DNA of 64,000 bases from Mantamonas sphyraenae STR306 (GCA_026936335.1 JAPMXV010000015.1:186001-250000); one strand, 5' to 3'. Positions 8,591 to 64,000 are shown, counted from the stretch's first letter. Numbers and translations are program-made. Notes: a model not told the origin generated them from the sequence alone.

Positions 8591-10012
8591 ATGGGCCAGT
8601 CTTCCAGCTCAGCTTCCATGCCCCAGGTGCCGTTCCCAGAGGTCGACCCGTATCTGTACACCCTACGTCGCTACGTTCAATCACACAGACACATTTCCAA
8701 TTTGGCATCCGTAGGGTACATTGTCGAGAACCGAATTTCTCTGGCCTGGCAACACGCACAGAGATGGGCCGACAACCTGAACCAGAGCGGCGACTACGAT
8801 CCAATCACACCCGAAACGAGCTTCTGGTGTGCCCAGCTTCCTAAGGATGAGCTGGAGAATGGATTGCTCTACGCTGCTGCGCATGACAACATGGATGCGT
8901 TCCGGGCCCTTCTTGTGCGCGGTTCGCGCTGGGGCGTGAACGTCCTGTCCGCCCAAAACGGCTTTGCGACACACATGTGCGCCTTGGAAATGGCAGTGCA
9001 CAAGGGCAGTCTTAACATTATTGAATCCTTGCTGGAAAGTGGGTTTCGCTGCCCACACAGGTCCATGCATCTCGAGGTGGCAATGGTCGGCAATTCGGCG
9101 AAAACGCTCCTTCCGCTGGTTCAACACGGCGCCACAACCGAGGGATGCATGTACGGTGTGTTGCAGGACGAATCTGCCATCGACGTCGTCCTCCCTTCCA
9201 TGAAGTTGCTCCCTGAGGAAGAGCTGAGGAAGGTGGCTGAGATGGAATTGTTCACAAGGACGTACTACAAACCCAAACACCGCCTGCTCACGAGAATGCT
9301 TGCGAATGGGATGGGAATGCCAGATGCATTGATTGCAGGTCTGCGCTTCATGCCGTATGGTGAGGTGCATGAGTACCTGGAGCAGGAATCCCCAGTTGTC
9401 AACGGCGTGGACTTGAGCCGCGGCATGACAGCCCTGCACATGGCGTGCAGGCATGGAGATGAAGACATTGTGCAAAAGCTGCTCAAGGTGGGTGCAGACC
9501 CGAATGGGTTGTCCACAAACGGATCGCCGCCGCTTCTCATCGCCGCAAGGAGGGGCAACGTCGAGATGGTGCGAGCACTCATCGACGCAGGTGCAGACAT
9601 GAACCACACGGACCGTCGTGCGTGCTGTGCTTTTGACATCGCTCTGAGTCGAAATCGCTACAAGATTTGCCTGGAGCTGGTTGCTCACGGCGCTCAGGTC
9701 CAGTGTGCAGAATGGTTGCGTAGGCGCAGGCCCCACCAAGTGCCGCAGATTCAATTGGCGTATGAATTCGGTGTGCTGCCGCAGTTTCTTGTGGCCAACA
9801 ACATGGGTGGGTGGACCAAAGAAAACCACTCCCTCCTGCCGGAGCAGCTGGACACGGCCGTCGAGTTGGCTCTCATGATGAATGCAGAAGAGCGCGATGA
9901 GATGTTTGAAGCAGGTGGCATGGATGCGTACACTCCTACGGCGTCGTGGATGACGCAGCCGGACGAGGTGATGGAAAGGATCCTCGACCATTTGTTGCTG
10001 CGCAAACTGTGA
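8591..10012 (+). CDS. Ankyrin-repeat protein with conserved C-terminal F-box/PRANC-like module (ANK-1)
   Basis: ANK motifs GMTALHMACRHGDEDIVQKLLKVGADPN and GSPPLLIAARRGNVEMVRALIDAGADMN. C-terminus WMTQPDEVMERILDHLL. Start MGQSSS is myristoylation-like. Intronless. Confidence 0.85.
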   Translation: MGQSSSSASMPQVPFPEVDPYLYTLRRYVQSHRHISNLASVGYIVENRISLAWQHAQRWADNLNQSGDYDPITPETSFWCAQLPKDELENGLLYAAAHDNMDAFRALLVRGSRWGVNVLSAQNGFATHMCALEMAVHKGSLNIIESLLESGFRCPHRSMHLEVAMVGNSAKTLLPLVQHGATTEGCMYGVLQDESAIDVVLPSMKLLPEEELRKVAEMELFTRTYYKPKHRLLTRMLANGMGMPDALIAGLRFMPYGEVHEYLEQESPVVNGVDLSRGMTALHMACRHGDEDIVQKLLKVGADPNGLSTNGSPPLLIAARRGNVEMVRALIDAGADMNHTDRRACCAFDIALSRNRYKICLELVAHGAQVQCAEWLRRRRPHQVPQIQLAYEFGVLPQFLVANNMGGWTKENHSLLPEQLDTAVELALMMNAEERDEMFEAGGMDAYTPTASWMTQPDEVMERILDHLLLRKL

Positions 10013-10091
10013 ACAATGTGATGACTCGCAAGCACACACATGAAGGTAAACGAACATGGAGAAGCATTGCGTACATTCCAATCTGCCTGAA

Positions 10092-11378
10092 TTAGCAGGT
10101 GATGACCGTTCCAGCGGCGGTTGTGCCTCGCACGCACACAAAGGTGATCATGCCACCATACTGGGCCATGTCATCCAAATGGGCCATCCAATACTCTCGC
10201 ATGAACACAGTGTGCAGAATCTTGTGGCAATGAAGACGCCAGACGCCCGGGCGCGCCGTGAACAGGACATCACGCGTGGTGCCCGGCGCCACATCGATGG
10301 TGGAACCGTTGACGCGTGCAGAGGGAGGCACAATGGCGCCAGTCTCGCCAATCTGCGTCCATACGTGGCCGTGGATGTGAAACGGGTGCGGCTCATCCTG
10401 GTTTGCGTTGGAAAAGCGAATGCGCACGCGGTCGCCGGCATCCACCTTGATCACAGGCACAGAGGGTGCAGAGCGACCGTTGATAAAGAACCAGTTGGAA
10501 TCGTCCATCATAAAGGTGTTGCACTTGGAGTCACCCTCGAGCCAGGCGCCACTGAGCATCAGCGAGAAATCCTTGTCTGCCACAGGTTCCTCACCGGGGC
10601 ACTTTGCCACCAGCACGCCAATGAGACCCTGCGGATCCTGACGCCACATGCGAGTGCCCGAATGGTACATCGCTGTGCCGCATTGTTCCATGGTGAACTC
10701 GTACGTAAACGACTCTCCGGGTGCCACGCTCTTCTGTGACACGCCTCCGCTGCCGTCCATCTCGTAGGGCACAATCAGCCCATGCCAGTGCACAGAGGTG
10801 GCCTCTTGAAGCTCGTTGTGGAACACAATGCGCACCTTGTCGCCCTTATTCACTTCAATCACAGGCCCCGGGGTTTGGCCGTTGAAGCCCCACGACGTCA
10901 TCTCACGCCGGTGGATGGGAAACTTGGAGACGTCGCGTGGGTCCTGTCGATCCGATGGCACCACGCTGTAGAGGCGGTCGTAGGCAGCTGCGCTTCCGTC
11001 CCAGATCTCCTGTGTCACAAGCTGAGCGTACAGGTGGAACACCTTGAAGCCGTCGTTGGACATGGTGTACCCGAGTGTGGCCACTCCGGGGGATTGCACC
11101 GTGCCGTTGCCCATGTTGTACCCGGGGATGGCGCTCGTCGCCGTCGGCGTTCGGCCAATCATGTGTTTGCACGCATCCTCCGCCTGTGCCGGTGAGGATT
11201 GGGCCTTGACCTGCTTACTCAGTGCATCCACTTGCTTGCTGGTCGCATCCGTAGCCACCAGCGACGCGACGGCGAGCGCAGTGGCGATGATCAACAGCAC
11301 AAAAACAAGCGCCATCACCGCAAACCGCCGCCATCCCCCTTTTCCCCTCTCGTCAATGCCCATCTGTTGGAAATCCAT
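10092..11378 (-). CDS. Two-domain multicopper oxidase (bacterial small-laccase/copper-oxidase type) with an N-terminal membrane anchor
   Basis: Cu motifs TSVHWHGL, MYHSG, HPFHIHGH and WRLHCHKILH...M; WGFNGQTPGPVIEV..GDKVRI; hydrophobic segment FAVMALVFVLLIIATALAVASLV; intronless. Confidence 0.85.
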   Translation of the reverse strand: MDFQQMGIDERGKGGWRRFAVMALVFVLLIIATALAVASLVATDATSKQVDALSKQVKAQSSPAQAEDACKHMIGRTPTATSAIPGYNMGNGTVQSPGVATLGYTMSNDGFKVFHLYAQLVTQEIWDGSAAAYDRLYSVVPSDRQDPRDVSKFPIHRREMTSWGFNGQTPGPVIEVNKGDKVRIVFHNELQEATSVHWHGLIVPYEMDGSGGVSQKSVAPGESFTYEFTMEQCGTAMYHSGTRMWRQDPQGLIGVLVAKCPGEEPVADKDFSLMLSGAWLEGDSKCNTFMMDDSNWFFINGRSAPSVPVIKVDAGDRVRIRFSNANQDEPHPFHIHGHVWTQIGETGAIVPPSARVNGSTIDVAPGTTRDVLFTARPGVWRLHCHKILHTVFMREYWMAHLDDMAQYGGMITFVCVRGTTAAGTVITC

Positions 11379-11504
11379 GGTTTCTTCTCTGCTGCTCTTG
11401 TGATGCCGTGTTTGGATGGTTCTTGCTCGTGGTGATGGGGACACACAGGAACTGAACAAAGAGGTTGTGTTCCCCGTCGCAGCCAGACGAAATTCCAAAC
11501 AACA

Positions 11505-12890
11505 ATGTCAAAACCCTCCCTCCACCACAACCTGCGCCTGAAGCAAATACTGCGGGCGGTGGAGAGGGGCCATTTGAATCATTCGGGGTTGAAATGGCTG
11601 CTGGCGAGTCAGTTTGGGGAATTCACGGCAGAACTCGCTCGCTGGCGGGCAGAGGACATCGATGCATCATTCAAAGGTCCCTGGTGGATGGACGTGAAGG
11701 AAGTGGACCGTCCCAAGGCACTCATGCACTGCATTTGGATGAAGGAGACCGAAGCCGTGATGCAGCTGCTGGAAGACGGTGTGGCCATTGAGTGCCCCGT
11801 GTCGAGCTCGAATTTCACCACGGTGTGTGCTCTGGAGATGGCTGTACGCTGTGGGGCCGTTGAACTCATCGATGCCTTGGCCCCACGCTGTTTCCACCTT
11901 TCGTTGCACTTGGAGGAGCTGCTGGTGGCGCCTGATGCGGCTACGGCGAAACGCCTTCTCGCACACGATCCCAAACTGCCAGCTGCGCTGCTCGGCTACT
12001 GCAACGACAATGACACGGTTCCTCTTTTGCTTCCTCTCGTGGCCAATGCTCCGGTAGAGGAGCAGGCCAAGGTGGTTCGGCACATGTTCTTTCCGCGACG
12101 CAATCCGATGCTGAGAGAGGTGCTACGTGCTCGCTTGTGCCTCCCCGATGCCCTTGTGCGTGGCATCAAGTACGGGAGACTGTTTGCCGATGATGTGAAT
12201 GAGTGTCTGGCTGGGAATGCGCTGGATGGGTTGAACCGGCGTGACACATTCCACTGCCAAACCGCACTGTATGTTGCCTCAAAGTCAGGCAATGAGGCTT
12301 TGGTTGCGCGGTTGCTGGAACTTGGTGCCAATCCCAATGTGACCACGGCAACAGGGCTCGCCCCACTGTTCCCTGCGGCACGCCGTGGCTTCACACACAT
12401 TGTGCGTCGTCTCATCGATGCCGGCGCCGATGTCAATCTGCAGGACCACATGCGACGGTGTGCGTTTGACATTGCCCTGCGCTACGATCGTGGACCTGTG
12501 CTGATGCTCCTTGCGTGTGCGGGTGCCGTTCCCGGAGGCGTTAATCCCGCGCATTGGATCCGATGCCGACGCACTCAGCAACTCAAAGCATTGTGTGTGG
12601 CACACGATATGCAGACTTTGCCACAGTTCATTGCTGCCACGTTCCTGGGTGGCTGGAGCGAAGAGACGCACGCACTTGTGTTCCCTGCCCAGCTTGACAC
12701 AGCCGTCGAGGTGGCTCTTACCATGAACGCAGAGGAGCGTGAAGAGATGTTTGAAGCAGGTGGCATGGATGCGTACACACCCACGGCGTTGTGGTCGACA
12801 CAGCCAGATGAGGTGATGGAACGCATCCTCGACCACCTCCTGTGTCGCAACCTCCCACGCAAACGCAGGCGGAGAGGCAGATCACAGTGA
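11505..12890 (+). CDS. Ankyrin-repeat protein with conserved C-terminal module and basic tail (ANK-2)
   Basis: QTALYVASKSGNEALVARLLELGANPN, GLAPLFPAARRGFTHIVRRLIDAGADVN; C-terminus WSTQPDEVMERILDHLLCRNLPRKRRRR. Confidence 0.85.
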   Translation: MSKPSLHHNLRLKQILRAVERGHLNHSGLKWLLASQFGEFTAELARWRAEDIDASFKGPWWMDVKEVDRPKALMHCIWMKETEAVMQLLEDGVAIECPVSSSNFTTVCALEMAVRCGAVELIDALAPRCFHLSLHLEELLVAPDAATAKRLLAHDPKLPAALLGYCNDNDTVPLLLPLVANAPVEEQAKVVRHMFFPRRNPMLREVLRARLCLPDALVRGIKYGRLFADDVNECLAGNALDGLNRRDTFHCQTALYVASKSGNEALVARLLELGANPNVTTATGLAPLFPAARRGFTHIVRRLIDAGADVNLQDHMRRCAFDIALRYDRGPVLMLLACAGAVPGGVNPAHWIRCRRTQQLKALCVAHDMQTLPQFIAATFLGGWSEETHALVFPAQLDTAVEVALTMNAEEREEMFEAGGMDAYTPTALWSTQPDEVMERILDHLLCRNLPRKRRRRGRSQ

Positions 12891-12928
12891 ATGTACAGCG
12901 AATGAATGGCGGAATGGTGCACCTCCAC
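12618..12928 (+). repeat. ~310-bp near-identical direct repeat (copy 1): 3' coding module plus start of 3' UTR of ANK-2
   Basis: Matches 14188-14504 (offset ~1570) with few substitutions, while the upstream ANK sequence is far more diverged. Confidence 0.9.
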
Positions 12929-12993
12929 TTTCCTATAATACCAATCCAACATCCAATCCTCCCTCCAGCCCAACGCAATCGCCAGCATCCAGC

Positions 12994-14481
12994 ATGGGCA
13001 ACTCCTCAACGTATGCCCCCTCACCCAATGCACACAACGCACACAGTGCACAGGGTGTGGATGTGTCCCCTTGGGATGGGTACTCGGATCATCTGGCCAG
13101 GCAAGCTACCAGGCAGCACCCAGATGTGCTGCGAGGTTGGGATCAAACGCGACATGCCCACATCATCTCATTCCCCGGAAAGATCGATGTTCAGGAGGAC
13201 AACTTCTGGGCAGGGGCATCCCGTTTGGAACAAACCAGGGCTCTGTGGGTGGCTGTGCGGGAAGATTCTCCAGAGGCGGTGCAGGAGATGCTGAACCTGC
13301 GGACCTTTTGGGCCGAAGATCCCGAGGTCGACTCAGATCTTGCGGGTCCCTCGCTCAAGACCCGCGTGTGTGTGGTGGAAGTGGCAATCCGCTACGAAAG
13401 CCTCAACGTACTTCGACACCTCGTCAACACCGATCAGATGTGTCCTCACCATGGAATGCACGTGGCAGTGGCCCTCCTCAGGAACATTTCGCAGGAATTG
13501 CTCCAACTCCTGCTCGACCAATCGCCCGTGGTTCCCCCCAGTGTGTGGGCACTGGCTGCAACCGATGACATGGCCCAGTTTGTGTTCCCCCATGTCCAAC
13601 AGCTGTCAAAGGCCGAGCTGCAAGTGCTCTCGTACGCCGTCACAGACCGAGTTGTCCGCTACTTCACCGACACCCTCAGGCCCACGCCCATGCTCAAGCT
13701 CATGCTCTCTTCCGCAATGGGACTTCCCGAAACACTGGAGATGGGCATCCGCTACCAGGTCAACGACGCTGTGGAGGCGTGTTTGGATTCCGGTGCAGAC
13801 CTTGCGCTCTTTGCGTCGGACGATTGTGGCCGCACGCCACTGTTCCACGCCTGTAAGCTGGGCAACGAAACAGTCGTGGCACGACTGTTGGAACTGGGTG
13901 CTGATCCTTCCCAGCAGACTGTGCACGGCATTGCGCCCTTGCACCCAGCTGCACGTTCTGGCCACGAGGTCGTGGTGCAACATCTCATCGCCGCGGGTGC
14001 AGATGTGAACGTGTACGACAGCTACAGGCGCAGTCCATTCCATCTTGCACTCCGCCATGATCGCTACCGTGTGTGCGCGATCCTCGCGGCAGCTGGGGCG
14101 GATCCCGGTGCCGAGGATGACGAGTGGATTGTCACGAGGCGACCTCATCAGCTGAGTGTGTTTCGATGTGCCTACGCCATGAACTGCTTGCCACAGTACA
14201 TTGCTGCCACGTACCTCGGTGGCTGGAGCGAAGAGGCACACGCACTTGTGTTCCCTGCCCAGCTTGACACAGCCGTCGAGGTGGCTCTTACCATGAACAC
14301 AGAGGAGCGTGAAGAGATGTTTGAAGCAGGTGGCATGGATGCGTACACACCCACGGCGTTGTGGTCGACACAGCCAGATGAGGTGATGGAACGCATCCTC
14401 GACCACCTCCTCTGTCGCAACCTTCCACGCAAACGCAGGCGGAGAAACAGAAGCAGGCCACGGCGAATGTACAGTGAATGA
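12994..14481 (+). CDS. Ankyrin-repeat protein with conserved C-terminal module and basic tail (ANK-3)
   Basis: GRTPLFHACKLGNETVVARLLELGADP, GIAPLHPAARSGHEVVVQHLIAAGADVN; C-terminal module almost identical to ANK-2; start MGNSST. Confidence 0.85.
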   Translation: MGNSSTYAPSPNAHNAHSAQGVDVSPWDGYSDHLARQATRQHPDVLRGWDQTRHAHIISFPGKIDVQEDNFWAGASRLEQTRALWVAVREDSPEAVQEMLNLRTFWAEDPEVDSDLAGPSLKTRVCVVEVAIRYESLNVLRHLVNTDQMCPHHGMHVAVALLRNISQELLQLLLDQSPVVPPSVWALAATDDMAQFVFPHVQQLSKAELQVLSYAVTDRVVRYFTDTLRPTPMLKLMLSSAMGLPETLEMGIRYQVNDAVEACLDSGADLALFASDDCGRTPLFHACKLGNETVVARLLELGADPSQQTVHGIAPLHPAARSGHEVVVQHLIAAGADVNVYDSYRRSPFHLALRHDRYRVCAILAAAGADPGAEDDEWIVTRRPHQLSVFRCAYAMNCLPQYIAATYLGGWSEEAHALVFPAQLDTAVEVALTMNTEEREEMFEAGGMDAYTPTALWSTQPDEVMERILDHLLCRNLPRKRRRRNRSRPRRMYSE

Positions 14482-14504
14482 ATGGCGGAATGGTGCACCT
14501 CCAC
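14188..14504 (+). repeat. ~310-bp near-identical direct repeat (copy 2): 3' module of ANK-3
   Basis: Matches 12618-12928, including the downstream GAATGAATGGCGGAATGGTGCACCTCCAC. Confidence 0.9.
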
Positions 14505-14548
14505 ACAGGTGACAAAAATCACACGGAATTCCATTTGCTTCCCTCAAG

Positions 14549-49711: not shown

Positions 49712-49724
49712 AAACGGTGTTTGT

Positions 49725-51515: not shown

Positions 51516-51583
51516 GCCTTGCAGCGAAGACAAATAGGTGCTGCGGACGGCGCGCAGTGCACCAAGCATCAAGAAAACAAAAA

Positions 51584-52219
51584 ATGTCGACGGTGCATCG
51601 ATGGTTGAGCCCAAAGCAGGCAGGCGATGTGACACAGCTGTTGGGGATGGTGTGTGCAGACGTGTCTGTGGGCCAGCTGGAGTGGCTGGCGGAGGATGCA
51701 GGTTTGTTGGCCACCTCGAGCCACCACGTGGCTGTGGAGCTCGTGCTCATGAGTCATCTCTTTGTGGGCTTCCCCAAAGCCATCAACGGACTGCGTGTGT
51801 TGCGTGAGCATGTGTCGCTGACGCAGGAGGAGCACGCCTGGGCCGAGACTCTTCCCGAGCCGTTTGACCAGCACAAGGCCATGCAGAACATCCAACAGGT
51901 GTACGGAGGGGTCACATCCGCTCTGTGTATGAACATGAAGCAGGCACATCCCGTGATTGAGCGGCAAATGCTGCAATCGTACCAAAACTTCTTTGCTCGA
52001 CCAGGCTGCTCCATTGCACAAAGGGAACTGGGCGTTCTGGCCATGGTGGCTGCCACATACGTGCCAAGCGTGCGTCCGCAGCTCCAGTCGCATGTTCGTG
52101 GGGCGGTACGGTGTGGCGCTGAGCGAGGTGATGTGGTGGGGATGCTGCGTTTGGCGGCACTCTACAATGCAGAGCACAGCAGTGAGGTGATGGACGTGTG
52201 GGAGGAGATGGCAATGTAA
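51584..52219 (+). CDS. Carboxymuconolactone decarboxylase/AhpD-like protein
   Basis: ELVLMSHLFVGFPKAINGL; FARPGCSIAQRELGVLAMVAA; QLQSHVRGAVRCGA. Confidence 0.7.
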   Translation: MSTVHRWLSPKQAGDVTQLLGMVCADVSVGQLEWLAEDAGLLATSSHHVAVELVLMSHLFVGFPKAINGLRVLREHVSLTQEEHAWAETLPEPFDQHKAMQNIQQVYGGVTSALCMNMKQAHPVIERQMLQSYQNFFARPGCSIAQRELGVLAMVAATYVPSVRPQLQSHVRGAVRCGAERGDVVGMLRLAALYNAEHSSEVMDVWEEMAM

Positions 52220-52250
52220 AGAAAGGGCTCTTTGGGAGCGGGGGTTGTGA

Positions 52251-54054
52251 ATGCTCGCATCCTCGGGCAAGGAAAACATGTGGGGAAGCGATGAAAAGGC
52301 GATTGCAGCCATGGAGGCCGGACAGCCGGATGTGTTGCGTGAGCACCTGACGTCCACGGGCAATCGTCCGATGCTGGTGCTTGTTGGTGCCCAGTTGGAT
52401 GATGGGGCGCTGCGTGTGTTGTGGGAGTGCCGACGGGTGGTTCGCGAGGTCGCCCTCTCCGCCTGCACCTTTTCGCCGCCGCTGGAGTGCATGCGTGTGC
52501 TGAGCCAAGTGCTGGGGGACCCAGAGTCGCGTGTGGATACCTTTGCGTTGGACATCTTGTCTAGGTTTGCGGAGGAGGAGGAGAGGGAGCTGGCGGACGG
52601 GCTGGAACAGGCCGGGGATCGGCTGCGTTCGTTGACGCTGTCTGTGTACGGAACGGGGCCCAAACGCTCGTTTGTGCATGCACTGAACGCATTGGAAGCA
52701 TCATGCACAGCGCTAGAGACGTTGACCTTGGGAGGAATTGGCTTGACGGGAGAGGAGGACACGGGCGAAGGCGCCGAGATGGTTGCAAGGTTGGTTGAAC
52801 GCAGCCTGGTCAAGGTGACTCTGGTGAACGTGAGTTTCTGCGTGGCAGCAGTGCATAGGATTGCAGAGGGAGTGGGAGAGGCAACGCGGTTGCGGGAGCT
52901 CTGTGTTGAACGGCCGAACGGCAATCAGTGTCCCGGGTTGCCACAGCTGGTGGAGCAGGCGGCACGCAGCTCGACTGTGACCCATTTGAGTCTTCGGACG
53001 ATTCGAATCAGTGCGGAGGACCTGATTGAAGTGGCAGAGGCGTTGGCGAGCGCAGGCAGCAAGTGGCGACATGTGAACTTGAGCGGGCTGAAAGCAGAGG
53101 AGAGCTTCATGCGCTCACTGGTGGGACCGCAAACGATGCACTTGGGCGATGTCGATGCATTGGAGGAGGGCCAGCTTGCCCTGTGTCGTGCCTTGGGAGG
53201 CATGGTCAGATTGCATTGTTTGAGGTTGTCGATGGTGGAGTTCAGTGCTAGCGGGTACGTGGAACTGGCACAGGCGCTGGCCAAGATGACACAGCTGCGC
53301 ACATTGGAATGCGGAGACAGGAGTATGGATGCAAAGGCGGTGGAGGCGGTGTGTGAAGGGGTCCGTGTCCATCCAACGCTGACCAGTGTTCACCTGTCCT
53401 ACGCCGTGAACATTCCGGAAGAGACCGCACAGAGGGTGTTGGGCATGGTGGAGGAGAATGAGATGCTTCAGGAGGCAGCGGGTGTGTGGGAGCTGCTGCG
53501 GGAATACGATAATTTGTTGGAGGCGACAGTGGGGCTGGTGAAGCGCAGGCGCAGGCTGAGAGAGGTTTCTCGCAATGGGATGTGCCATCAACAGGCCCTG
53601 TGGAGGAATGCAAGGCTGGCAAAGGAGCTTGCAGAGGCGGCGCGCGTTGGGGATGTCCCAAAGGTGCGGGAGGCGTTGGAGGGTGGTCTGTCGGTCAACA
53701 CGGTTTTTCGCAACGCATCTGTGGTCAACGGGACATTGGAGGGCGGGCACGTGGAGGTGTGGGAGGTGCTGGAGGAGTATGGGTTGAGGGGGGAGTTGAC
53801 AGAGTGGGAGAAGGAGCAATGTGGGGAGATTGTGAGGGAGAAGGGTGTGTGGAGGAAGGAATGGCATTGGGTGATGGGTGAGGAGGTGGATGAGAGGATA
53901 GAGGTGGCACTGGTGATGAACATGGAGGAGAGAGATGTGATGTTTGAGGCGGGTGGGATGGAGGGGTATGTGGAAGAGACGGGGGTGGGAGGGATGGGTG
54001 ACACTGCCGGATGAGGTGATGGAAAGGGTGGAGAGGTGGTTGGGGGCGGGATGA
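52251..54054 (+). CDS. RNI-like LRR protein + ankyrin-like unit + conserved C-terminal module (LRR-1); +1 G in a homopolymer at ~53981
   Basis: LxxLxL repeats (LRSLTLS, LETLTLG, LRELCVE, VTHLSLR); ANK-like LAEAARVGDVPKVREALEGGLSVNT. A G5 run (G4 in the other copies) shifts the last ~24 codons; the corrected end is TGA 54052-54054. Confidence 0.8.
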
Positions 54055-54106
54055 GGTGAGTGATGGAATGTATGGTCATCGTGAGGCGATCTGGCGGGCA
54101 GCTCAA

Positions 54107-55839
54107 ATGGCGCGCACACGACAAAGCGGGAGGAAGCCTCAAAGGCCCCTGAAGAGGGCGTTGGAGGGCACTGTGGAGGATGTGCGAGTGCAGATTCGAA
54201 GGGCACAACACACGGTCAGAGTGGATTGGGTTTCAATGACGGAAGAAGAGTTGGCCAAGCTGCAGGAAGCGTGCGAGGGGGTGGAAGTGCGAGCGTTGTC
54301 GCTGAACTGTGGCAAAGTGCCGATGGGGTCTGTGGGGGCATTTCTGGAAGGGTGCATGGCACAGCAGAGGCACTTGCAGGTGTTGAAGCTGCACCAACTG
54401 GCCCAGGAGAGAAGGCGAGGGCCAGGATGGACGGGCAAAGTTGTTCCAAGCGCTGGAGCTGGTGGGAGGGGCGCTTCGTGAGTTGAGAGTGAAGCGGTCA
54501 ATGTTTTCATGGGGACTCCCCTTCGTGGGTGGGTGTGTGTGATGCGGTGGCCAACGGGTGCCCGATGCTGGAGGAGTTGTGGTTGGACGAAGGCATGACT
54601 TTGGAGGACCTTGGACGGGTGCTGCACTCTTGCACGAGGCTGAAAGTGTTGCGCATGACAAGGTTCGGATTGGAGAGTGAGGAGGAGACACTGGAGATGG
54701 CACGGCTGATCGGGAAGAGCAGGTTGCGTCATTTGAAATTCTGGTTCACAGTTGCTACGTCGTCGTTTGACTACGGTGGCATTGTTGAGGAGATGCTTGG
54801 ATGTGGGACACTGCGAGACATATGCATCTCTGGCACAGTGGGGGTAGCAAAAGCTGAGAAAGGGCTGGCAAGGGCGTTGGAGGGCGGTGGCGGGCAACTG
54901 CGCCGGCTGGATCTCCAGAGGCTGCGCGTGAGGAAGAGGTTGGAGAAAGAGTTTCGGGAGAGTGGAGAATCGATGATGTTGGGATTGTGCGAGGCGTTGC
55001 AGAGGCACACGCAGCTGGAGATGGTTGGATTGGGCATGGAGTTGGATGCGAAGGAGGCAACAGCGCTGGCGACGGCGTTGGAAGGGATGAAGGGTCTGCG
55101 AGAGGTGTGCTTGCCGCATGGAAGCACATCGGATGAAGGAATGATTGCAGTGGCGGATGTGCTGCGTGTGCATCCGACAGTGGTGCAGGTGACGTTGGGA
55201 TCGTACTTGAAGGAACGAGTGAGCGATGAGGTGGGTGATGCGCTGTTGAGGATGGTAGAAGAGAATGAGAGGTTGATAGAGGCAATTGGACCTTGGGCAA
55301 AGAGAGATGTGAACATGGAGGTGCGGGAGAAAGTGTTGAAGGCAGTGGAAGGACGTGTGCGGCTGCAGCGAATTGGGGGATATGGGGATGGTTTTGAAGG
55401 TGCAAAGAGGTTGGTGAAGGCGCAGAGCGTGGATGCGGTGCGGGAGGAATTGGAGAGGGGGATGTGGGTGAACACGCGCGTGATGGGATTGGAAGAAAGG
55501 GAGTGGTTGGTGGAGAATGTGCTGGTGAGAGGGGATGTGGAGGTGTGGGAGGTGCTGGAGGAGTTTGGGTTGCGGGGGGAGTTGACAGAGTGGGAGAAGG
55601 AGCAATGTGGGGAGATTGTGAGGGAGAGGGGTGTGTGGAGGAAGGAATGGCATTGGGTGATGGGTGAGGAGGTGGATGAGAGGATAGAGGTGGCACTGGT
55701 GATGAACATGGAGGAGAGAGATGTGATGTTTGAGGCGGGTGGGATGGAGGGGTATGTGGAAGAGACGGGGTGGGAGGGATGGGTGACACTGCCGGACGAG
55801 GTGATGGAAAGGGTGGAGAGGTGGTTGGCGGTGGGTTGA
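54107..55839 (+). CDS. LRR-ANK-module protein (LRR-2); two frameshifts (~54408, ~54525), either sequencing errors or a pseudogene
   Basis: ORFs 54056..54481 and 54529..55839 are both collinear with LRR-6; CAG GAG AGA here vs CAG GGA GAA in LRR-6. Confidence 0.7.
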
Positions 55840-55913
55840 GTGGGACAATGAAACATTTGAGTTCACCCAAGAACAATGCATTCCATCGCTGCGACTTCTG
55901 GAGCAAATGAACC

Positions 55914-57656
55914 ATGTTCCAGGACGAAGAAGTACTCGCATGCTTGCACAACAGGGACAAAGAGGGGTTGGCGGATCTCATCACACCTTGTGGTGGCCTT
56001 TGGATGGAGGCTTCCAAGGTGACGGCAGCAGAGATGGAGGTTCTGGCTGAGTTGACCTCGGGAATGAACTTCCAGTTGCTGGCGTTCTGCAGCATTCCTG
56101 TGGAGGAAGAAGCTGAAGCCTGGTACGCAGCACTTGGATCTTTGATGATGGAGCCCAGGGATCTCACCGACCTTTTGCTTCAGGACATTGGAGTCTTCAG
56201 CCCACTTCCAGAAAAGGCAGCGCTTTCCCTGGCAAACGCTCTGCAACACGGCAAACACAGGATTTCGTGCTTGGATTTCACAGGGACGTTTCCACTGGGT
56301 GATGCAGCGTTTGGGCACATGGCCAACGCACTGACAACGTGGCCCTCGTGGCAGCTGGAGAGCTTGGAGCTCTCTGGAACGGACATCTCGGACGAGAGTG
56401 TGCCTGCACTGAAGCAGGTGATTGCCCATTCGACGCAACTGCACTCATTGGATGTGTCTCGCACCCGTTTGTCTCTGACGGGACTGGAGACGCTGGGCAA
56501 AGCGATGTGTGGTTCCGGGTCGCTGCGGAAAGTGACGGTGGGCCGACCGCACATGCGCAGGGTGGATGGTGAGCCAACGATGGGCGCTGTTATGGATCGT
56601 ATGTTGGGAGGGGTCGCTGTGCGAGAGGTGCAACTGTGTGGGATGTTGGACAGGGTGGCGGAGATTGACCTTGCGCGTGCGTTGCTGGATCGCGGTGAGC
56701 ATCTCCACATGCTGAAAATGGACAAGATGTCTATGGAAAGGGCAGAGAGTGAGGAGAAAGGGATGGATTTGATGGATGCGGTGGTGCAGATGCCCCATCT
56801 GGACACATTGCATGTGGATGCGAGGCGTATGTCAAACACGGCGCTGGAGAGGCTTGCCAGTGGGTTGAACGAGGGCATGCGAGAACTGCGTGAGCTGGAG
56901 GTGCTGAACATGAATCCAGAGATGATGTGTGTGGTGTGTTTTGCGGTGGCCGCGCATCCGGGTCTGATCAAGGTGACGTTTCAAGGCAGCCAGCAGCTCA
57001 TCAACGATGAGGTGAAGAGTGCGATAGAGCACATGGTGAGCACGAACAATCGACTGCATTACTTTGCGGGACCGCGGGAGTTGCGTCAGGACGCCGCGCA
57101 GCGAATTGCGGATGTGGTGCGTGACAAGGGTGCTTCCTCCAACATGCAATTCATCAAAGTCGGCATGGGCAGGGGAGCGGAGCCTGCACACAATGTGTCA
57201 CGGTGCAAAGACCTGTTTGCTGCCATGAAGGTGGAGGACGTGGAGGGGATGCGGGAGATCCTGGACAGCGGGGTGTGGGTGAACACGGTGGTGGACTACA
57301 CATCGAAGTATGCTCTGAGCCAGGCAACGATACGGCATGGGCATGCAGAAGCATGGAGGGTGTTGGAGGAGTACGGGCTGCGGGAGGAGCTGAACGAGAG
57401 GGAGCGGGATATTTGCAAAGCTGTGGCATTGAAGGCGCAGAGATGGAACCCAGCGTGGCATTGGTTGATGGATGAGGATGTGGATGAGAGGATAGAGGTG
57501 GCACTGGTGATGAACATGGAGGAACGGGAGGTGATGTTTGGGGCAGGTGGGATGGAGGGGTATGTGGAAGAGACAGGGTGGGAGGGATGGGTGACACTGC
57601 CGGATGAGGTGATGGACAGGGTGTTGAAGTGGGTGGCGGTGGGCTGGGGTGTGTGA
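55914..57656 (+). CDS. LRR-ANK-module protein (LRR-3), most divergent member
   Basis: LESLELSGTDISDE, LHSLDVSRTRLS; C-terminus WHWLMDEDVDERIEVALVMNMEER...WVTLPDEVMDRVLKWV. Confidence 0.85.
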   Translation: MFQDEEVLACLHNRDKEGLADLITPCGGLWMEASKVTAAEMEVLAELTSGMNFQLLAFCSIPVEEEAEAWYAALGSLMMEPRDLTDLLLQDIGVFSPLPEKAALSLANALQHGKHRISCLDFTGTFPLGDAAFGHMANALTTWPSWQLESLELSGTDISDESVPALKQVIAHSTQLHSLDVSRTRLSLTGLETLGKAMCGSGSLRKVTVGRPHMRRVDGEPTMGAVMDRMLGGVAVREVQLCGMLDRVAEIDLARALLDRGEHLHMLKMDKMSMERAESEEKGMDLMDAVVQMPHLDTLHVDARRMSNTALERLASGLNEGMRELRELEVLNMNPEMMCVVCFAVAAHPGLIKVTFQGSQQLINDEVKSAIEHMVSTNNRLHYFAGPRELRQDAAQRIADVVRDKGASSNMQFIKVGMGRGAEPAHNVSRCKDLFAAMKVEDVEGMREILDSGVWVNTVVDYTSKYALSQATIRHGHAEAWRVLEEYGLREELNERERDICKAVALKAQRWNPAWHWLMDEDVDERIEVALVMNMEEREVMFGAGGMEGYVEETGWEGWVTLPDEVMDRVLKWVAVGWGV

Positions 57657-57684
57657 CGATGGTGCGGCAAGGGCGGCAACGGAA

Positions 57685-59433
57685 ATGCAGGCTGCCCTTG
57701 AGATCGCCTTGAGTGGCGGCGTAGACGATGTGAAGATGGAGATTGTGCGAGCTGGTGGTGTGATTGACGCACGGACGTTTGTGTTGAATGAAGAGCAGCT
57801 GAGTGTGTTGGAGGGGGCTGTCGAGGAAGTGGACGGCGACGTACACAGGGTGGAGCTCAATTGTCATATCCTGCCCCAATCGGCACTTGCACGTTTTGTG
57901 TCAACGCTGAATGGGCTGGCAAGCCGACTAGAGGTTCTGCGGCTGGAATGGATGGGAATACGTGGCTACGAAGGGAATCTGGAGCGGCAGCGGCTGTGTG
58001 ATGCGGTGTCCGGTTGTTCCACACTACGCGTGTTTTTCCTGTCCTATGACCCGTTTTGCGGCAGTCAGGAAGGAGACGCGAGCATGTTTGAGGCTTTGGC
58101 AACCGGGTGTCCGGCGTTGGAGGAGGTGCGGCTGGCAGAGTCGCCTACCCAGCCGTCGTTTGCTCGGATGATGCAGGGATGCACACAGTTGAGGACACTG
58201 GAGCTTCCAAGCATCGGCAAATGGAACCATGATACGCCAGGGTGGCTGTCAACGGAGATTGGGGGTAGTTGTTGTTTGCGGCGGTGTTTGCTCTCGTTCA
58301 ATGGCCACGTGGGCGACTTTGGGGCATTCTTCGAGGCCATCGTGGCGTGTGGAACACTGCGTGAATTGATACTGTCGGGAAAGGCGGTGCAAGACAAGGA
58401 GGGGTTGGCTGGGCTTGCAGAGGCGTTGGAACGTGGCTGCGGGCGGCAGCTTCGTCGTTTGGACTTGAGCAGGCTGGAACTGAGGAATGGCAAGGACAGA
58501 ATTGCAGCGGGAGGGACAACAATGATGTTGGGTGTGTGCAAGGCGTTGAAGACACACACACAACTGCACATGCTGGGTCTAGGAGTGGCACTGGATTACA
58601 GCGGGTGTCTGGCGCTGGCAGAGGCGTTGGAAGGGATGCAGGAGCTGCGAGAGGTGAGTCTCCCCTTTGGGAGTGCATCCAATGAGGGTATGTGTACCCT
58701 CGCGGAGGCGTTGCGTGTGCATCCGACAGTGGAACGCGTTGATCTCTCGTCAATGAGGGATGCAAAGTTGACTGAGGAAGTGGGGGAGGCACTCGTGAAG
58801 ATGGTGGCTGAGAAAGATAGGTTGCAGTTTGCATTGGCACCGTGGTCAAGAATCGGGATGAACATGGACCTGCGTGTGGCGTTGATGGAGGCGGTCGCAG
58901 GGTTTGTTCGGCTGCAGTGGGTCGGAAAAGGGCCTGGCAAGGGTTGGACCCCACCGCAATTTGCGAGTGAGTTGTGCAAAGAGAACACAGAGTGTGCACA
59001 GAGGTTGGTGAAGGCGGAGAGTGTGGAGAGTGTGCGGGAGGAGCTGGAGAGGGGCTTGGGAGTGAACACGCGTGTGGCAGGCAGGGGTGGAGGGGAGTGG
59101 GTGGTGGAGAATGTGTTGGTGAAGGGGGATGTGGAGGTGTGGGAGGTGTTGGAGGAGTATGGGTTGAGGGAGGAGTTGACAGAGTGGGAGAAGGAGCAAT
59201 GTGGGGAGATTGTGAGGGAGAGGGGTGTGTGGAGGAAGGAATGGCATTGGGTGATGGGTGAGGAGGTGGATGAGAGGATAGAGGTGGCACTGGTGATGAA
59301 CATGGAGGAGAGAGATGTGATGTTTGAGGCCGGTGGGATGGAGGGGTATGTGGAAGAGACGGGGTGGGAGGGATGGGTGACACTGCCGGATGAGGTGATG
59401 GAAAGGGTGGAGAGGTGGTTGGCGATGGAGTAG
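57685..59433 (+). CDS. LRR-ANK-module protein (LRR-4)
   Basis: LEVLRLE, LEEVRLA, LRTLELP, LRRLDLS repeats; conserved C-terminal module. Confidence 0.85.
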   Translation: MQAALEIALSGGVDDVKMEIVRAGGVIDARTFVLNEEQLSVLEGAVEEVDGDVHRVELNCHILPQSALARFVSTLNGLASRLEVLRLEWMGIRGYEGNLERQRLCDAVSGCSTLRVFFLSYDPFCGSQEGDASMFEALATGCPALEEVRLAESPTQPSFARMMQGCTQLRTLELPSIGKWNHDTPGWLSTEIGGSCCLRRCLLSFNGHVGDFGAFFEAIVACGTLRELILSGKAVQDKEGLAGLAEALERGCGRQLRRLDLSRLELRNGKDRIAAGGTTMMLGVCKALKTHTQLHMLGLGVALDYSGCLALAEALEGMQELREVSLPFGSASNEGMCTLAEALRVHPTVERVDLSSMRDAKLTEEVGEALVKMVAEKDRLQFALAPWSRIGMNMDLRVALMEAVAGFVRLQWVGKGPGKGWTPPQFASELCKENTECAQRLVKAESVESVREELERGLGVNTRVAGRGGGEWVVENVLVKGDVEVWEVLEEYGLREELTEWEKEQCGEIVRERGVWRKEWHWVMGEEVDERIEVALVMNMEERDVMFEAGGMEGYVEETGWEGWVTLPDEVMERVERWLAME

Positions 59434-59467
59434 GGTTGGGTGATGACGCTGGGGGAGACAATGAAAC

Positions 59468-61213
59468 ATGATGCCGTTTGGGCCCGGTGGGTCCGGCGAA
59501 GGGAAACGTTTGCGTGTGGCGTTGGAGAGCGGTGCGATGGAGGCTCATGCGATTATTGTGGAGGAAAACAATGTGGTGAATGTGACATGGAAGGCAACCG
59601 AGTGGGAGCTGGAGGTGTTGAAAACGGCGTTGCAGGCGTGGAAAGGAAACAACCTCAAGCTGCGGTGCAGGAAACTCCGCATGGAGACACTTGCGGAACT
59701 GGTGGATGCGATTCTCAGCGATGGAAATGAGTTGCAAGCGTTGAAGCTGAAGGAGGTGACGCGGTCAGAGGGTGAGGCGGCGCTTGCGAAAGTGCTCGAG
59801 GAAAGAGGGTCCACGCTCTTGGCGCTGCACATCGGTCGCTGGATCTTTGACAGTGACAAACACCGTATACCGTTGGTGTGTACTGCGATTGGTAGTGGTT
59901 GCACTGCTCTTCGCGAAGTGTGTTTGGAGGTTTCACCCGAGAAAGAAGCCCTGGAGCATCTGGTTCAGAACTGCACGCATCTGAAGGTCCTACGCTTGCT
60001 ACAGCTGCGTTCAAAAGGGAGAAAGAGTTGGAAGTGGCTGGGGGAGGCTGTGAGCAAAAGTCGGCTTCGGGAGGTGCAGTTTGGGTTTTCGCAGCAGGTG
60101 AAGGGTGTCGGAGCGATGCTGAGCAAGATGTTCCTCTGTGAAACACTGCGCATCGTGACTTTGAGTGGCCAGGTGGCATCTGTGGAGGTTGATGAGCTGG
60201 AAGGAGTGGCAGAGGCACTGGAGACGGGAGGCCGGCAACTGCGCAGGATGGATCTGAGCAATTTCTGGGTGGGCAGGGAGGCCAAAGAATGGGCAGCTGA
60301 GGAGAGGGTGTCTCTGATGGCGGGTGTGTGCAAGGCGTTGCAGGGACACACGCAGCTGGATATGGTGGGACTTGGGGCGCCTTTGGATGATGAGGCGACC
60401 GTGGCGATGGCCGAGGCCATGGTAGAGATGGATGAGCTGCGTGAATTGCGGTTGCCGTATGGAAGCACGCCAGAGTATGGGTTGTGTATGCTTGCAGAGG
60501 CTGTGCGGCGGCACCCTGCGTTGGAGTGGGTTCAGCTTGCGACCGGGGTGGTCTCGAGGGTTCTTGGGGCGGAAGCAAGAGACGCTCTCGTGGGGATGGT
60601 GAGGGAAAACGACAGATTGCAAGTGGTGGAGGGTCCGTGGGGGGAGTTTGGGGCAAACAGTGCGATGCGAGGGCATGTTGTTCGGGCAGCGCTGGGGCAT
60701 GTGAGACTTCAGACGATTGGAAATCGAACGTGGGGAGGTGTGGATGAGGTGTTTGAGGAGAACATGGCGTGTGCTGAGAGGTTGGTGAAGGCGGAGAGTG
60801 TGGAGAGTGTGCGGGAGGAGCTGGAGAGGGGCTTGGGAGTGACCACGCGGATGGCGGGAAGGCGGCAAAGGGAATGGGTGGTGGAGAATGTGTTGGTGAA
60901 GGGGAATGTGGAGGTGTGGGAGGTGTTGGAGGAGTATGGGTTGCGGGAGGAGTTGACAGAGTGGGAGAAGGAGCAATGTGGGGAGATTGTGAGGGAGAAG
61001 GGTGTGTGGAGGAAGGAGTGGCATTGGGTGATGGGTGAGGAGGTGGATGAGAGGATAGAAGTGGCACTGGTGATGAACATGGAGGAGAGAGATGTGATGT
61101 TTGAGGCAGGTGGGATGGAGGGGTATGTGGAAGAGACGGGGTGGGAGGGATGGGTGACACTGCCGGATGAGGTGATGGAGAGAGCGGTGAAGTGGTTGGG
61201 GGAGGGGTCATGA
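59468..61213 (+). CDS. LRR-ANK-module protein (LRR-5)
   Basis: LQALKLK, LREVCLE, LKVLRLL, LRRMDLS repeats; conserved C-terminal module. Confidence 0.85.
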   Translation: MMPFGPGGSGEGKRLRVALESGAMEAHAIIVEENNVVNVTWKATEWELEVLKTALQAWKGNNLKLRCRKLRMETLAELVDAILSDGNELQALKLKEVTRSEGEAALAKVLEERGSTLLALHIGRWIFDSDKHRIPLVCTAIGSGCTALREVCLEVSPEKEALEHLVQNCTHLKVLRLLQLRSKGRKSWKWLGEAVSKSRLREVQFGFSQQVKGVGAMLSKMFLCETLRIVTLSGQVASVEVDELEGVAEALETGGRQLRRMDLSNFWVGREAKEWAAEERVSLMAGVCKALQGHTQLDMVGLGAPLDDEATVAMAEAMVEMDELRELRLPYGSTPEYGLCMLAEAVRRHPALEWVQLATGVVSRVLGAEARDALVGMVRENDRLQVVEGPWGEFGANSAMRGHVVRAALGHVRLQTIGNRTWGGVDEVFEENMACAERLVKAESVESVREELERGLGVTTRMAGRRQREWVVENVLVKGNVEVWEVLEEYGLREELTEWEKEQCGEIVREKGVWRKEWHWVMGEEVDERIEVALVMNMEERDVMFEAGGMEGYVEETGWEGWVTLPDEVMERAVKWLGEGS

Positions 61214-61245
61214 TCGTGACGGTTGGCGATGTGTGCACCAACAAA

Positions 61246-63000
61246 ATGGCTCTTCTTCCCCGGGAGCCGACCGCTCTACAGCGAGCGTTGGAAGGCAGTG
61301 TGGAGGATGTGCGAGAGGAATTGATGAAGAATGAACTTCAGGTGAATGTGAAATGGGCCAATGTCTCAGAGGACGAGCTGGCCAAGCTGCAGGAAGCGTG
61401 CGAGGGAGTGGAAGTGCGAGCGTTGTCGCTGAACTGTGGCAAAGTGCCGATGGGGTCTGTGGGGGCATTTCTGGAAGGGTGCATGGCACAGCAGAGGCAC
61501 TTGCAGGTGTTGAAGTTGTACCAATTGGCCCAGGGAGAAGGCGAGGGCCAGGATGGACCGGCAAAGTTGTTCCAAGCGCTGGAGTTGGTGGGAGGGGCGC
61601 TTCGTGAGTTGAGAGTGAAGCGGTCACTGGATGGATTAAGGATGCGATCGAGGAATTCGTGGAAGAACGTATTGATTTATGCGGTGGCCAATGGGTGCCC
61701 GATGCTGGAGGAGTTGTGGTTGGACGAACGCCTGAGTGGGGACGACCTTGGACGGGTGCTGCACTCTTGCACGAGGCTGAAAGGGTTGCGCCTGACACAT
61801 TTCGGATTGGAGAGTGAGGATGAGACACTGGAGATGGCACGGCTGATCGGGGAGAGCGGGTTGCGTGTGGTGAAGCTTTCCTTGCAGAAATCGTGGTCAA
61901 ACCTTGGCACCATCGTCGGGGCGATGCTTGAATGTGGGACACTGAGGGAATTGGTTCTCAATGGCACTTTGACGGATGAAGAATCAGTGAAAGGGCTGGG
62001 AAGGGCGTTGGAGGGCGGTGGCGGGCAACTGCGTCAGCTGGATCTGCAGTGGCTGCGTTTGAACAGCGTGTTGCAGAGAAGGTTTCGGGAGAGTGGAGAA
62101 TCGATGATGTTGGGATTGTGTGAGGCGTTGCAGGGACACACGCAGCTGGAGATGGTTGGATTGGGCATGGAGTTGGATACGAAGGAGGCAACAGCGCTGG
62201 CGACGGCGTTGGAAGGGATGAAGGGTCTGAGAGAGGTGTGCTTGCCGCATGGAAGCACATCGGATGAAGGAATGATTGCAGTGGCGGATGTGCTGCGTGT
62301 GCATCCGACAGTGGTGCAGGTGACGTTGGGATCGTACTTGAAGGAACGAGTGAGCGATGAGGTGGGTGATGCACTGTTGAGGATGGTAGAAGAGAATGAG
62401 AGGTTGGTAGAGGCAATTGGACCTTGGGCAAAGAGAGATGTGAACATGGAGGTGCGGGAGAAAGTGTTGAAGGCAGTGGAAGGACGTGTGCGGCTGCAGC
62501 GAATTGGGGGATATGGGGATGGTTTTGAAGCAGCGTTTCGGAAGAAGAAGAACAGTGCACAGAGATTGGTGAAGGCGGAGAGTGTGGATGCGGTGCGGGA
62601 GGAGCTGGAGAGGGGATTGTGGGTGAACACGCGTGTGTTACGGGGATGGGAAGAAGGGGAGTGGGTGGTGGAGAATGTGTTGGTGAAGGGGAATGTGGAG
62701 GTGTGGGAGGTGTTGGAGGAGTATGGGTTGCGGGAGGAGTTGACAGAGTGGGAGAAGGAGCAATGTGGGGAGATTGTGAGGGAGAAGGGTGTGTGGAGGA
62801 AGGAATGGCATTGGGTGATGGGTGAGGAGGTGGATGAGAGGATAGAGGTGGCACTGGTGATGAACATGGAGGAGAGAGATGTGATGTTTGAGGCAGGTGG
62901 GATGGAGGGGTATGTGGAAGAGACGGGGTGGGAGGGATGGGTGACACTGCCGGATGAGGTGATGGAGAGAGTGGTGAAGTGGTTGGGGGAGGGGTCATGA
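61246..63000 (+). CDS. LRR-ANK-module protein (LRR-6)
   Basis: Intact ORF; long near-identical stretches shared with LRR-2; conserved C-terminal module. Confidence 0.87.
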   Translation: MALLPREPTALQRALEGSVEDVREELMKNELQVNVKWANVSEDELAKLQEACEGVEVRALSLNCGKVPMGSVGAFLEGCMAQQRHLQVLKLYQLAQGEGEGQDGPAKLFQALELVGGALRELRVKRSLDGLRMRSRNSWKNVLIYAVANGCPMLEELWLDERLSGDDLGRVLHSCTRLKGLRLTHFGLESEDETLEMARLIGESGLRVVKLSLQKSWSNLGTIVGAMLECGTLRELVLNGTLTDEESVKGLGRALEGGGGQLRQLDLQWLRLNSVLQRRFRESGESMMLGLCEALQGHTQLEMVGLGMELDTKEATALATALEGMKGLREVCLPHGSTSDEGMIAVADVLRVHPTVVQVTLGSYLKERVSDEVGDALLRMVEENERLVEAIGPWAKRDVNMEVREKVLKAVEGRVRLQRIGGYGDGFEAAFRKKKNSAQRLVKAESVDAVREELERGLWVNTRVLRGWEEGEWVVENVLVKGNVEVWEVLEEYGLREELTEWEKEQCGEIVREKGVWRKEWHWVMGEEVDERIEVALVMNMEERDVMFEAGGMEGYVEETGWEGWVTLPDEVMERVVKWLGEGS

Positions 63001-63032
63001 TTGTGATGGTTGGCGATGTGTGCACCAACAAA

Positions 63033-64000
63033 ATGGCTCTTCTTCCCCGGGAGCCGACCGCTCTACAGCGAGCGTTGGAAGGCAGTGTGGAGGATGTGCG
63101 AGAGGAATTGATGAAGAATGAACTTCAGGTGAATGTGAAATGGACCAATGTCTCAGAGGACGAGCTGGCCAAGCTGCAGGAAGCGTGCGAGGGGGTGGAA
63201 GTGCGAGCGTTGTCGCTGAACTGTGGCAAAGTGCCGATGGGGTCTGTGGGGGCATTTCTGGAAGGGTGCATGGCACAGCAGAGGCACTTGCAGGTGTTGA
63301 AGTTGTACCAACTGGCCCAGGGAGAAGGCGAGGGCCAGGATGGACCGGCAAAGTTGTTCCAAGCGCTGGAGTTGGTGGGAGGGGCGCTTCGTGAGTTGAT
63401 AGTGAAGCGGTCACTGGATGGATGGAGGATGCGATCGTGGACTTCGTGGAGGAACGTATTGATTTATGCGGTGGCCAATGGGTGCCCGATGCTGGAGGAG
63501 TTGCGGCTGGACGAATGCCTGAGTGGGGACGACCTTGGACGGGTGCTGCACTCTTGCACGAGGCTGAAAGGGTTGCGCCTGACAAGGTTCGGATTGGAGA
63601 GTGAGGGGGAGACGCTGGAGATGGCACGGCTGATCGGGGAGAGCAGGTTGCGTGTGGCGAAGCTTTCCTTGCAGAAATCGTGGTCAAACCTTGGCACCAT
63701 TGTTGGGGCGATGCTTGGATGTGGGACACTGAGGGAATTGGTTCTCAATGGCACTTTGACGGATGAAGAATCAGTGAAAGGGCTGGGAAGGGCGTTGGAG
63801 GGCGGTGGCGGGCAACTGCGTCAGCTGGATCTGCAGTGGCTGCGTTTGAACAGCGTGTTGCAGAGAAGGTTTCGGGAGAGCGGAGAATCGATGATGTTGG
63901 GGTTGTGTGAGGCGTTGCAGGGACACACGCAGCTGGAGACGGTTGGATTGGGCATGGAGTTGGATACGAAGGAGGCAACAGCGCTGGCGACGGCATTGGA
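63033..64000 (+). CDS. LRR protein (LRR-7), recent tandem duplicate of LRR-6, truncated by the window end
   Basis: Open frame from AAAATG 63033 to the window end, collinear with LRR-6 at an offset of 1787 bp. Confidence 0.85.
   Translation, partial: MALLPREPTALQRALEGSVEDVREELMKNELQVNVKWTNVSEDELAKLQEACEGVEVRALSLNCGKVPMGSVGAFLEGCMAQQRHLQVLKLYQLAQGEGEGQDGPAKLFQALELVGGALRELIVKRSLDGWRMRSWTSWRNVLIYAVANGCPMLEELRLDECLSGDDLGRVLHSCTRLKGLRLTRFGLESEGETLEMARLIGESRLRVAKLSLQKSWSNLGTIVGAMLGCGTLRELVLNGTLTDEESVKGLGRALEGGGGQLRQLDLQWLRLNSVLQRRFRESGESMMLGLCEALQGHTQLETVGLGMELDTKEATALATAL

Follow-up and report, generated by a model that had tools for sequence, protein, structure and literature searches.

The window analysed here, a 64,000-nucleotide stretch of the Mantamonas sphyraenae genome (GCA_026936335.1, JAPMXV010000015.1:186001-250000; window positions are counted from its first letter), carries three ankyrin repeat (ANK) genes and six leucine-rich repeat (LRR) genes whose products all end in the same C-terminal module of ~65 residues. 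As the original prediction held, a six-frame motif scan confirmed exactly nine copies of this module, each with the MF.AGGM motif and its described flanks, all on the plus strand and all at the C-terminal end of long open reading frames (ORFs). The nine genes are members of one very large, telomere-proximal, Mantamonas-specific family that evolves by birth and death, and we believe that this family probably acts as a repertoire of recognition adaptors. The proteins consist of a variable solenoid, mostly of RNI-type LRRs but of ankyrin repeats in at least three sub-lineages, followed by a constant ANK pair and the constant ~65-residue domain. This is a real, lineage-specific family of recognition type, and its constant domain is an orphan.

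The family extends far beyond the window. M. sphyraenae, a marine flagellate of the CRuMs supergroup, is free-living, moves by gliding and has mostly mono-exonic genes; the FALCON assembly of isolate SRT306 comprises 25.06 Mb in 78 contigs (longest 751.365 kb, GC 59.19%), 59 of which have telomeres at both ends (PMC10492846). The assembly as searched holds 25,061,354 bases in 78 contigs at ~59% GC, with TTAGGG arrays at contig ends. A profile built from the window modules found 365 candidate module sites in the 25.06-Mb genome; 150 of the 365 were scored, every one of them at E <= 5e-23 and together on 43 contigs, and the copy number is therefore at least 150. Since the same module recurs at this strength throughout the genome, the nine-gene pattern lies far above chance, and the lineage-specific expansion that had been proposed from the window is borne out. 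The copies are also placed and oriented in a regular way. Within 70 kb of a contig start, 51 of 53 module sites are on the minus strand (p = 3e-13). Seven contigs, those whose length is known, carry 58 sites, of which 51 are no more than 70 kb away from the nearer end; the median distance is 31.7 kb, and transcription runs towards the nearer telomere at 55 of the 58. In 200 kb of clusters there are ~60 module-bearing ORFs, about one per 3.3 kb.

Only two kinds of scaffold precede the module. Among the 51 ORFs of at least 330 amino acids (aa), 44 are of the LRR_6 type and at least 8 of the ANK type; no third domain type recurs among them, the partner scaffolds being RNI-type LRRs and ankyrin repeats. 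The LRRs belong to the RNI type by their tandem 28-residue LxxLxLxxNxIGxxG units and by matches to LRR_6 (PF13516) in 44 of the 51 ORFs, the best at E 1.7e-106. The window LRR genes, individually weak against Pfam LRR models, are homologues of the RNI-type LRR family seen across the genome, with which hhalign aligned them over 474 columns (probability 100%, E = 3e-62). Ankyrin membership (Pfam Ank_2, PF12796) is found in ANK genes 1, 2 and 3 of the window at 6.8e-25, 2.3e-14 and 3.6e-19, and in the members on contig C70 at 1.7e-89. The family consensus runs from an N-terminal cap through n copies of LxxLxLxxNxIGxEGAAALAQALxxNxS, a C-terminal cap and the ANK pair to GWRKAWHWIGWGGQVDEAMEVALVMNGEEREVMFECGGMEEY-loop-WVTLPDEVMERVIGWVGRG. 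An ANK pair or ANK array stands immediately upstream of the module in all members, and W-(V/M/S)-T-(L/Q/V/M)-P-D-E lies near the stop codon. Because ANK pair and module are both constant in the consensus, the constant part amounts to ~150 residues. One locus departs from this order: an 897-aa frame (L042:4622-7312; G000:C54, minus strand) holds LRRs, ANK pair and module and then continues with ~400 aa of perfect ANK repeats. It could be a read-through fusion of two adjacent family genes or a gene that has lost its stop codon.

Variable solenoids on a constant module had been proposed at the outset, and the pattern of variation agrees with this. Across 300 LRR units, entropy is highest at positions 5, 7 and 8 of LxxLxLxxN (3.2-3.7 bits, against less than 1 bit at scaffold positions); these are the solvent-exposed positions of the concave beta-strand face, and W, Y, R, D and N are enriched there. 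Pairwise Nei-Gojobori comparison of 65 paralogs gave median ratios of nonsynonymous to synonymous substitution rates (dN/dS) of 0.31 in the module, 0.50 in the ANK pair and 0.61 in the last LRRs. The module is thus the most constrained part of the family. In an alignment of eight modules 26 columns are invariant, including N-EER-MF-AGGM-Y-W-T-PDEVM-R, while ANK-form and LRR-form modules are 41-46% identical. Synonymous sites are saturated between modules of the two types (proportion of synonymous differences 0.60-0.80), which together with the 26 invariant residues argues that the sharing of the module is old and has been kept by selection on the protein and not by recent DNA conversion. In a tree of the modules, three ANK lineages (the window cluster, C70 and C2) fall within the LRR majority. 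ANK and LRR scaffolds may have been swapped repeatedly; the tree, built on 72 columns, is compatible with a single origin too.

These data also bear on a quite different explanation, namely that most of the family is subtelomeric repeat DNA without a function, with a shared 3' end that stems from homogenisation at the DNA level. In the genome project, RepeatModeler repeats, which make up 12% of the genome and are mostly 'unclassified', were masked before BRAKER2 gene calling, and 9,416 gene models were published (PMC10492846). Such masking of de novo repeats would fit repeat DNA, as would the 15-20% of copies that are truncated and the lower median dS of the module within subfamilies (0.39, versus 0.67 upstream), which suggests that there is space for some gene conversion. 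However, 148 of the 150 scored modules contain no internal stop, and most are part of open frames of 400-1150 aa. In every region dN/dS stays under 1, and the module has the lowest value. ANK and LRR modules keep the invariant residues although the majority of their synonymous sites differ, and within the LRRs it is the structurally meaningful positions that vary most. We therefore regard the repeat-DNA explanation as highly improbable. The same masking step would mean that the family is possibly missing from the published proteome, of whose 9,416 gene models the 365 candidates would equal up to ~4%.

Returning to the recognition-adaptor repertoire, we propose the following model. With its hypervariable concave face, the variable solenoid would bind ligands of many kinds, proteins or others, and by the invariant end formed by the ANK pair and the module all members would dock to a single common partner in the cell. 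In this way the family would supply interchangeable recognition adaptors that feed one common output. An immune or antiviral role, which had been suggested for these genes, would be a further inference. As to the output, the leading candidate, albeit a tentative one, is that a cullin-RING ubiquitin ligase is recruited; a different role in signalling, in oligomerisation or in the nucleus is no less likely. A stronger version, in which module and ANK pair are a new docking domain that couples hundreds of germline-encoded, diversifying LRR and ANK binders to one effector pathway, possibly as a new receptor box for cullin-RING ligases, seems to us unlikely as things stand. Several points weigh against the model. 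The ligand binding proposed for the solenoids derives only from the pattern of variability, and, as mentioned above, 15-20% of the copies are truncated. The fold of the module is not confidently predicted: AlphaFold2 (AF2) gave a predicted local distance difference test score (pLDDT) of 69 for the isolated module, and in a model of the last 200 aa of a member (LRR gene 5 of the window) the ANK pair reached 84-93, while the module part, drawn as four to five helices, reached 48-66. Polar residues (H, N, EER, Y, T, PDE, R) prevail at its invariant positions, which could mean an active or ligand site instead of a docking helix. Finally, none of the tests run links the module to ubiquitin ligases.

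What, then, is the module? It comprises ~65 residues, rich in Trp and acidic residues and helical in the AF2 model, and we agree with the original prediction that it is not a named domain, since searches of Pfam, of Protein Data Bank (PDB) sequences and of 1.84 billion representative proteins returned none. The libraries searched evidently lack the predicted proteins of M. sphyraenae itself. Among the 1.84 billion proteins the module profile found no relative; its sole match there, P0121, is a Cys-rich repeat protein that matches 24 profile positions four times, and we judged it to be spurious. No relative was found among PDB sequences at E <= 10, nor among JGI metagenome contigs and IMG/VR viral contigs. 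A feature search of the ESM Atlas placed closest to the module a cluster that is an unnamed bacterial family (score 0.94, no Pfam family), which is uninformative. Homology searches with the full-length ANK proteins returned generic ankyrin proteins that aligned to the repeats only, with no match to the module, and fold searches with the module models, by Foldseek against the PDB and by VIA-align more widely, gave no meaningful match (best VIA-align Z 2.4). The genome paper makes no mention of LRR, ankyrin, F-box or subtelomeres (PMC10492846), and no Mantamonas paper was among the top-ranked results of a wider literature search. To judge from these searches, the module appears to be an orphan domain and the family to be undescribed.

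The original prediction also took the module for an F-box/PRANC-like element that recruits SKP1, and to this our results lend no support. On that reading the module would be a degenerate C-terminal F-box or PRANC element that recruits SKP1 and CUL1, and the family would be a set of substrate receptors of SKP1-CUL1-F-box (SCF) ligases. The idea has some appeal. The last helix, W-x-x-L-P-D-E-V-M-E-R-V-I-x-W-V, has an LP cap, and its LPDEVMERVxxW stretch has the hydrophobic spacing of F-box helix 1; it is placed after ankyrin repeats at the extreme C-terminus with W-x-x-L-P-x-E, as in the ANK/PRANC proteins of poxviruses. This motif is only 7 residues in length, and unrelated helices such as that of RHH_5 fit it as well. 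Two SKP1 paralogs lie ~4.5 kb apart (C35:33106-33926 and C35:37348-38504, each apparently split by introns), and with ~70 canonical F-box genes, at loci separate from the modules, they indicate that SCF machinery is present in the organism. Large, fast-evolving families of substrate receptors are moreover known in plants and nematodes.

Against this stand the profile searches and the length of the module. Neither the nine window proteins (hmmscan, E <= 0.1) nor the 51 family members gave an F-box match, and genome searches with F-box (PF00646) and F-box-like (PF12937) at E <= 1 returned 82-93 sites, none of them at a module. PRANC (PF09372) matched neither the full proteins at E <= 0.1 nor 37 isolated modules at E <= 10. 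At the latter threshold the 37 modules gave no F-box, F-box-like or SOCS_box match either; F-box_5 was found in 2 of the 37 only (E 0.14), whereas RHH_5, an unrelated ribbon-helix-helix family, matched the same terminal LPDE-helix weakly in 16. Most members have 12-16 residues, one helix, after the LP motif and end 3-5 residues past that helix, so that helices 2 and 3 of an F-box, which would take ~30 further residues, are missing; where tails run on past the terminal helix they are acidic or basic and of low complexity. The Leu of the LP motif is replaced by Q, V or M in several subfamilies, and the fold searches returned no F-box. A complex prediction of the module with a metagenomic SKP1 (L091, confirmed by Pfam and not the organism's own; four human-gut metagenome loci from the SKP1 pattern scan, L095, L098, L108 and L121, were excluded from all analysis) scored 0.02, which speaks neither for nor against binding. 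In our estimation, an F-box or PRANC identity of the module is doubtful. A circularly permuted F-box and, for the half that comprises MF...GGM...P-helix, a UBA/CUE-like domain were considered as well, and we put forward neither.

An alternative is that the module is an element like the SOCS box or BC box that docks Elongin B/C and Cul2 or Cul5. Its C-terminal position, its roughly fitting length and the LP-initiated helix that ends close to the stop codon, a few residues ahead of it, would suit such a box, and ANK repeats with a SOCS box, as in the ASB proteins, and LRRs with a BC box are established architectures. The 200-aa model also drew weak Foldseek rows for ASB7 and ASB8 with Elongin B/C (E ~0.8-1.2), but these are driven by the ANK repeats, have a root-mean-square deviation of 16 A and are not significant. 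SOCS_box (PF07525) did not match at E <= 10, and a BC box is not evident in the alignment, whose invariant columns contain no [STP]LxxxCxxx[LIV]. Furthermore, a genome search with Skp1_POZ matched only the two SKP1 loci and found no Elongin C, although a copy that is intron-split or divergent could escape such a search. We find this alternative very unlikely.

It is also possible, if some way short of probable, that the constant region represents a new domain, unconnected with ubiquitin ligases, for signalling, oligomerisation or a nuclear function, and works by ligand-triggered assembly or in the nucleus. The want of any homologue among the 1.84 billion proteins would suit a new domain, as would invariant residues that are mostly polar or aromatic and the conserved ANK pair that accompanies the module in every case. 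About one third of the members carry tails after the module that resemble nuclear localisation signals (NLS), of the GETRKRERDE(E)nVEKRQRVEEE type (for example L031, L033, L037, L041 and L045), and two of the three window ANK genes end in basic tails of this kind. Yet most members have no NLS-like tail, the remaining genes reaching their stop codon 3-5 residues past the last helix, the small size of the domain goes with a low-confidence prediction, and no positive evidence favours any specific activity. The members scanned showed neither a signal peptide at the N-terminus nor a transmembrane segment that convinced us, which suggests that the proteins of the family are intracellular.

Within the window the genes fall into two clusters. 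ANK gene 1 (8591..10012) encodes 473 aa from an ATG at 8591 and has its module at ~9806-10009; ANK gene 2 (11505..12890; 461 aa) has it at ~12648-12839, and ANK gene 3 (12994..14481; 495 aa) at ~14218-14409. Their last positions are 10009, 12887 and 14478, and PRKRRRR tails close the latter two genes, LPRKRRRRGRSQ at 12840-12887 and PRKRRRRNRSRPRR at 14410-14478. The N-termini of ANK1 (MGQSSSS, 8591-8610) and ANK3 (MGNSST, 12994-13013) both match the N-myristoylation pattern MGxxxS/T, which may point to membrane anchoring of some members; that of ANK2 (MSKPSL) does not match. Between ANK1 and ANK2 lies a multicopper oxidase gene (Cu-oxidase_3, 3.7e-35) at 10092-11498 on the minus strand, 6 nucleotides from the start of ANK2, and the cluster is flanked by very long intronless ORFs, also on the minus strand, at 2621-8578 (1985 aa) and 14549-23665 (3038 aa).

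The six LRR genes are arranged head-to-tail at 52251-63000, with last positions at 54011, 55836, 57653, 59430, 61210 and 62997. LRR gene 1 (52251..54014) is a 587-aa ORF with a module start at ~53844. LRR gene 2 (54056..55839) is represented in the assembly by two ORFs, 54056-54481 and 54529-55839, the second with a module at 55630-55836. LRR gene 3 (55914..57656; 580 aa, module 57438-57653) is the most divergent copy of the array. LRR gene 4 (57685..59433) has its first ATG at 57685 in a frame open from 57628 and its module at 59224-59430; LRR gene 5 (59468..61213; 581 aa) has its module at 61001-61210, and LRR gene 6 (61210..63000), which starts at an ATG at 61210 or 61246, at 62788-62997. 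A seventh LRR gene (62997..64000, ATG 62997 or 63033), which had been described as cut off before its module, does run past the window end in a frame open from 62958. It corresponds to locus L002, a 608-aa open frame, and its module lies ~550-780 nucleotides past the window, at C15:250551-250781. On this arm of C15 the array is then interrupted by ~17 kb without modules (C15:252558-269873) and resumes at 269873, 271596, 273368 and 275361.

All six LRR genes had been called complete. They do all bear the module, but two of them are not intact in the assembly. As assembled, LRR1 has one G more than its paralogs in a G-run at ~53980-53984, which shifts the frame inside the module so that the ORF terminates with GVGGMGDTAG. 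DNA alignment of LRR2 with LRR6 shows +1 at 54408 and -8 near 54520, that is, two frame breaks. Read-derived contigs from four DNA runs have one base fewer at 54408 (run X3) and at 54511 (runs X1-X3); the runs are of one study, probably the genome project itself, and are not independent strains. Because these contigs lack one base at both sites, the breaks in LRR2 are possibly assembly errors or allelic differences, and the gene may be intact in the organism. Many single-base differences between read-derived contigs and assembly also occur at 54655-57050 in LRR2 and LRR3 (for example 56591-56600 and 56730-56733), and these may reflect allelic variation in a diploid genome or contigs placed on the wrong paralog.

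CRuMs, the supergroup of Mantamonas, branches near the base of Amorphea and has been sampled poorly; the present genome is its only near-complete one. Tandem arrays close to telomeres, hypervariable LRR faces and alternative solenoids on one output domain are traits usually tied to host-parasite arms races. Should the constant domain prove to dock to a defined machine, the family would be an independent invention of 'many sensors, one effector' on a new protein domain. If this is indeed a new docking domain, the deep-branching CRuMs lineage would have its own telomere-organised repertoire for cell-autonomous recognition or immunity. Otherwise, the family would still be a clean case of a strongly constrained orphan domain and a warning on repeat masking.

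The family resembles several known systems in part. It shares with the ANK/PRANC F-box proteins of poxviruses (and of Orientia and Wolbachia) the succession of ANK repeats, a short C-terminal W-x-x-L-P-x-E and an amphipathic helix, and also the organisation as a multigene family, situated close to the ends of the genome, in which the binding repeats vary and the tail is constant. In contrast to PRANC, there is no match to the PRANC model, no structural element follows the helix of the LP motif here, where PRANC keeps a second helix, and ~45 conserved residues upstream of the motif have no PRANC counterpart; the Mantamonas members are, furthermore, mostly of the LRR type and belong to a cellular protist and not to a virus or bacterium. 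FBXL proteins and the expanded F-box families of plants and Caenorhabditis likewise combine an RNI-like or CC-type LRR scaffold with a small constant adaptor element, in large families with birth-and-death evolution and variable binding surfaces. In Mantamonas, however, the order is reversed, the constant element being C-terminal and without a match to the F-box hidden Markov model, while the ~70 canonical F-box genes lie elsewhere. The ASB and LRR-1/PRAME BC-box receptors also have a solenoid and, after it, a C-terminal box of ~40-60 aa that is helical and closes with an LP-helix, but the Mantamonas module has no SOCS or BC-box signature, and the Skp1_POZ search found no Elongin C in the genome.

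Similarly, the LRR family of Tetrahymena, the 21.1 ANK proteins of Giardia and the LRR families of microsporidia comprise hundreds of lineage-specific LRR or ANK genes in subtelomeric tandem arrays. The Mantamonas family differs from these expansions in joining two types of solenoid to one orphan C-terminal domain with its ANK pair, and in its uniform telomere-ward orientation. Lastly, the invariant LRR scaffold with a hypervariable concave beta-strand face recalls the lamprey VLRs and the LRR sensors of plant and animal NLRs. Unlike those systems, the Mantamonas family lacks NACHT and NB-ARC domains, a signal peptide, a stalk and somatic assembly; its diversity is encoded by germline paralogs.

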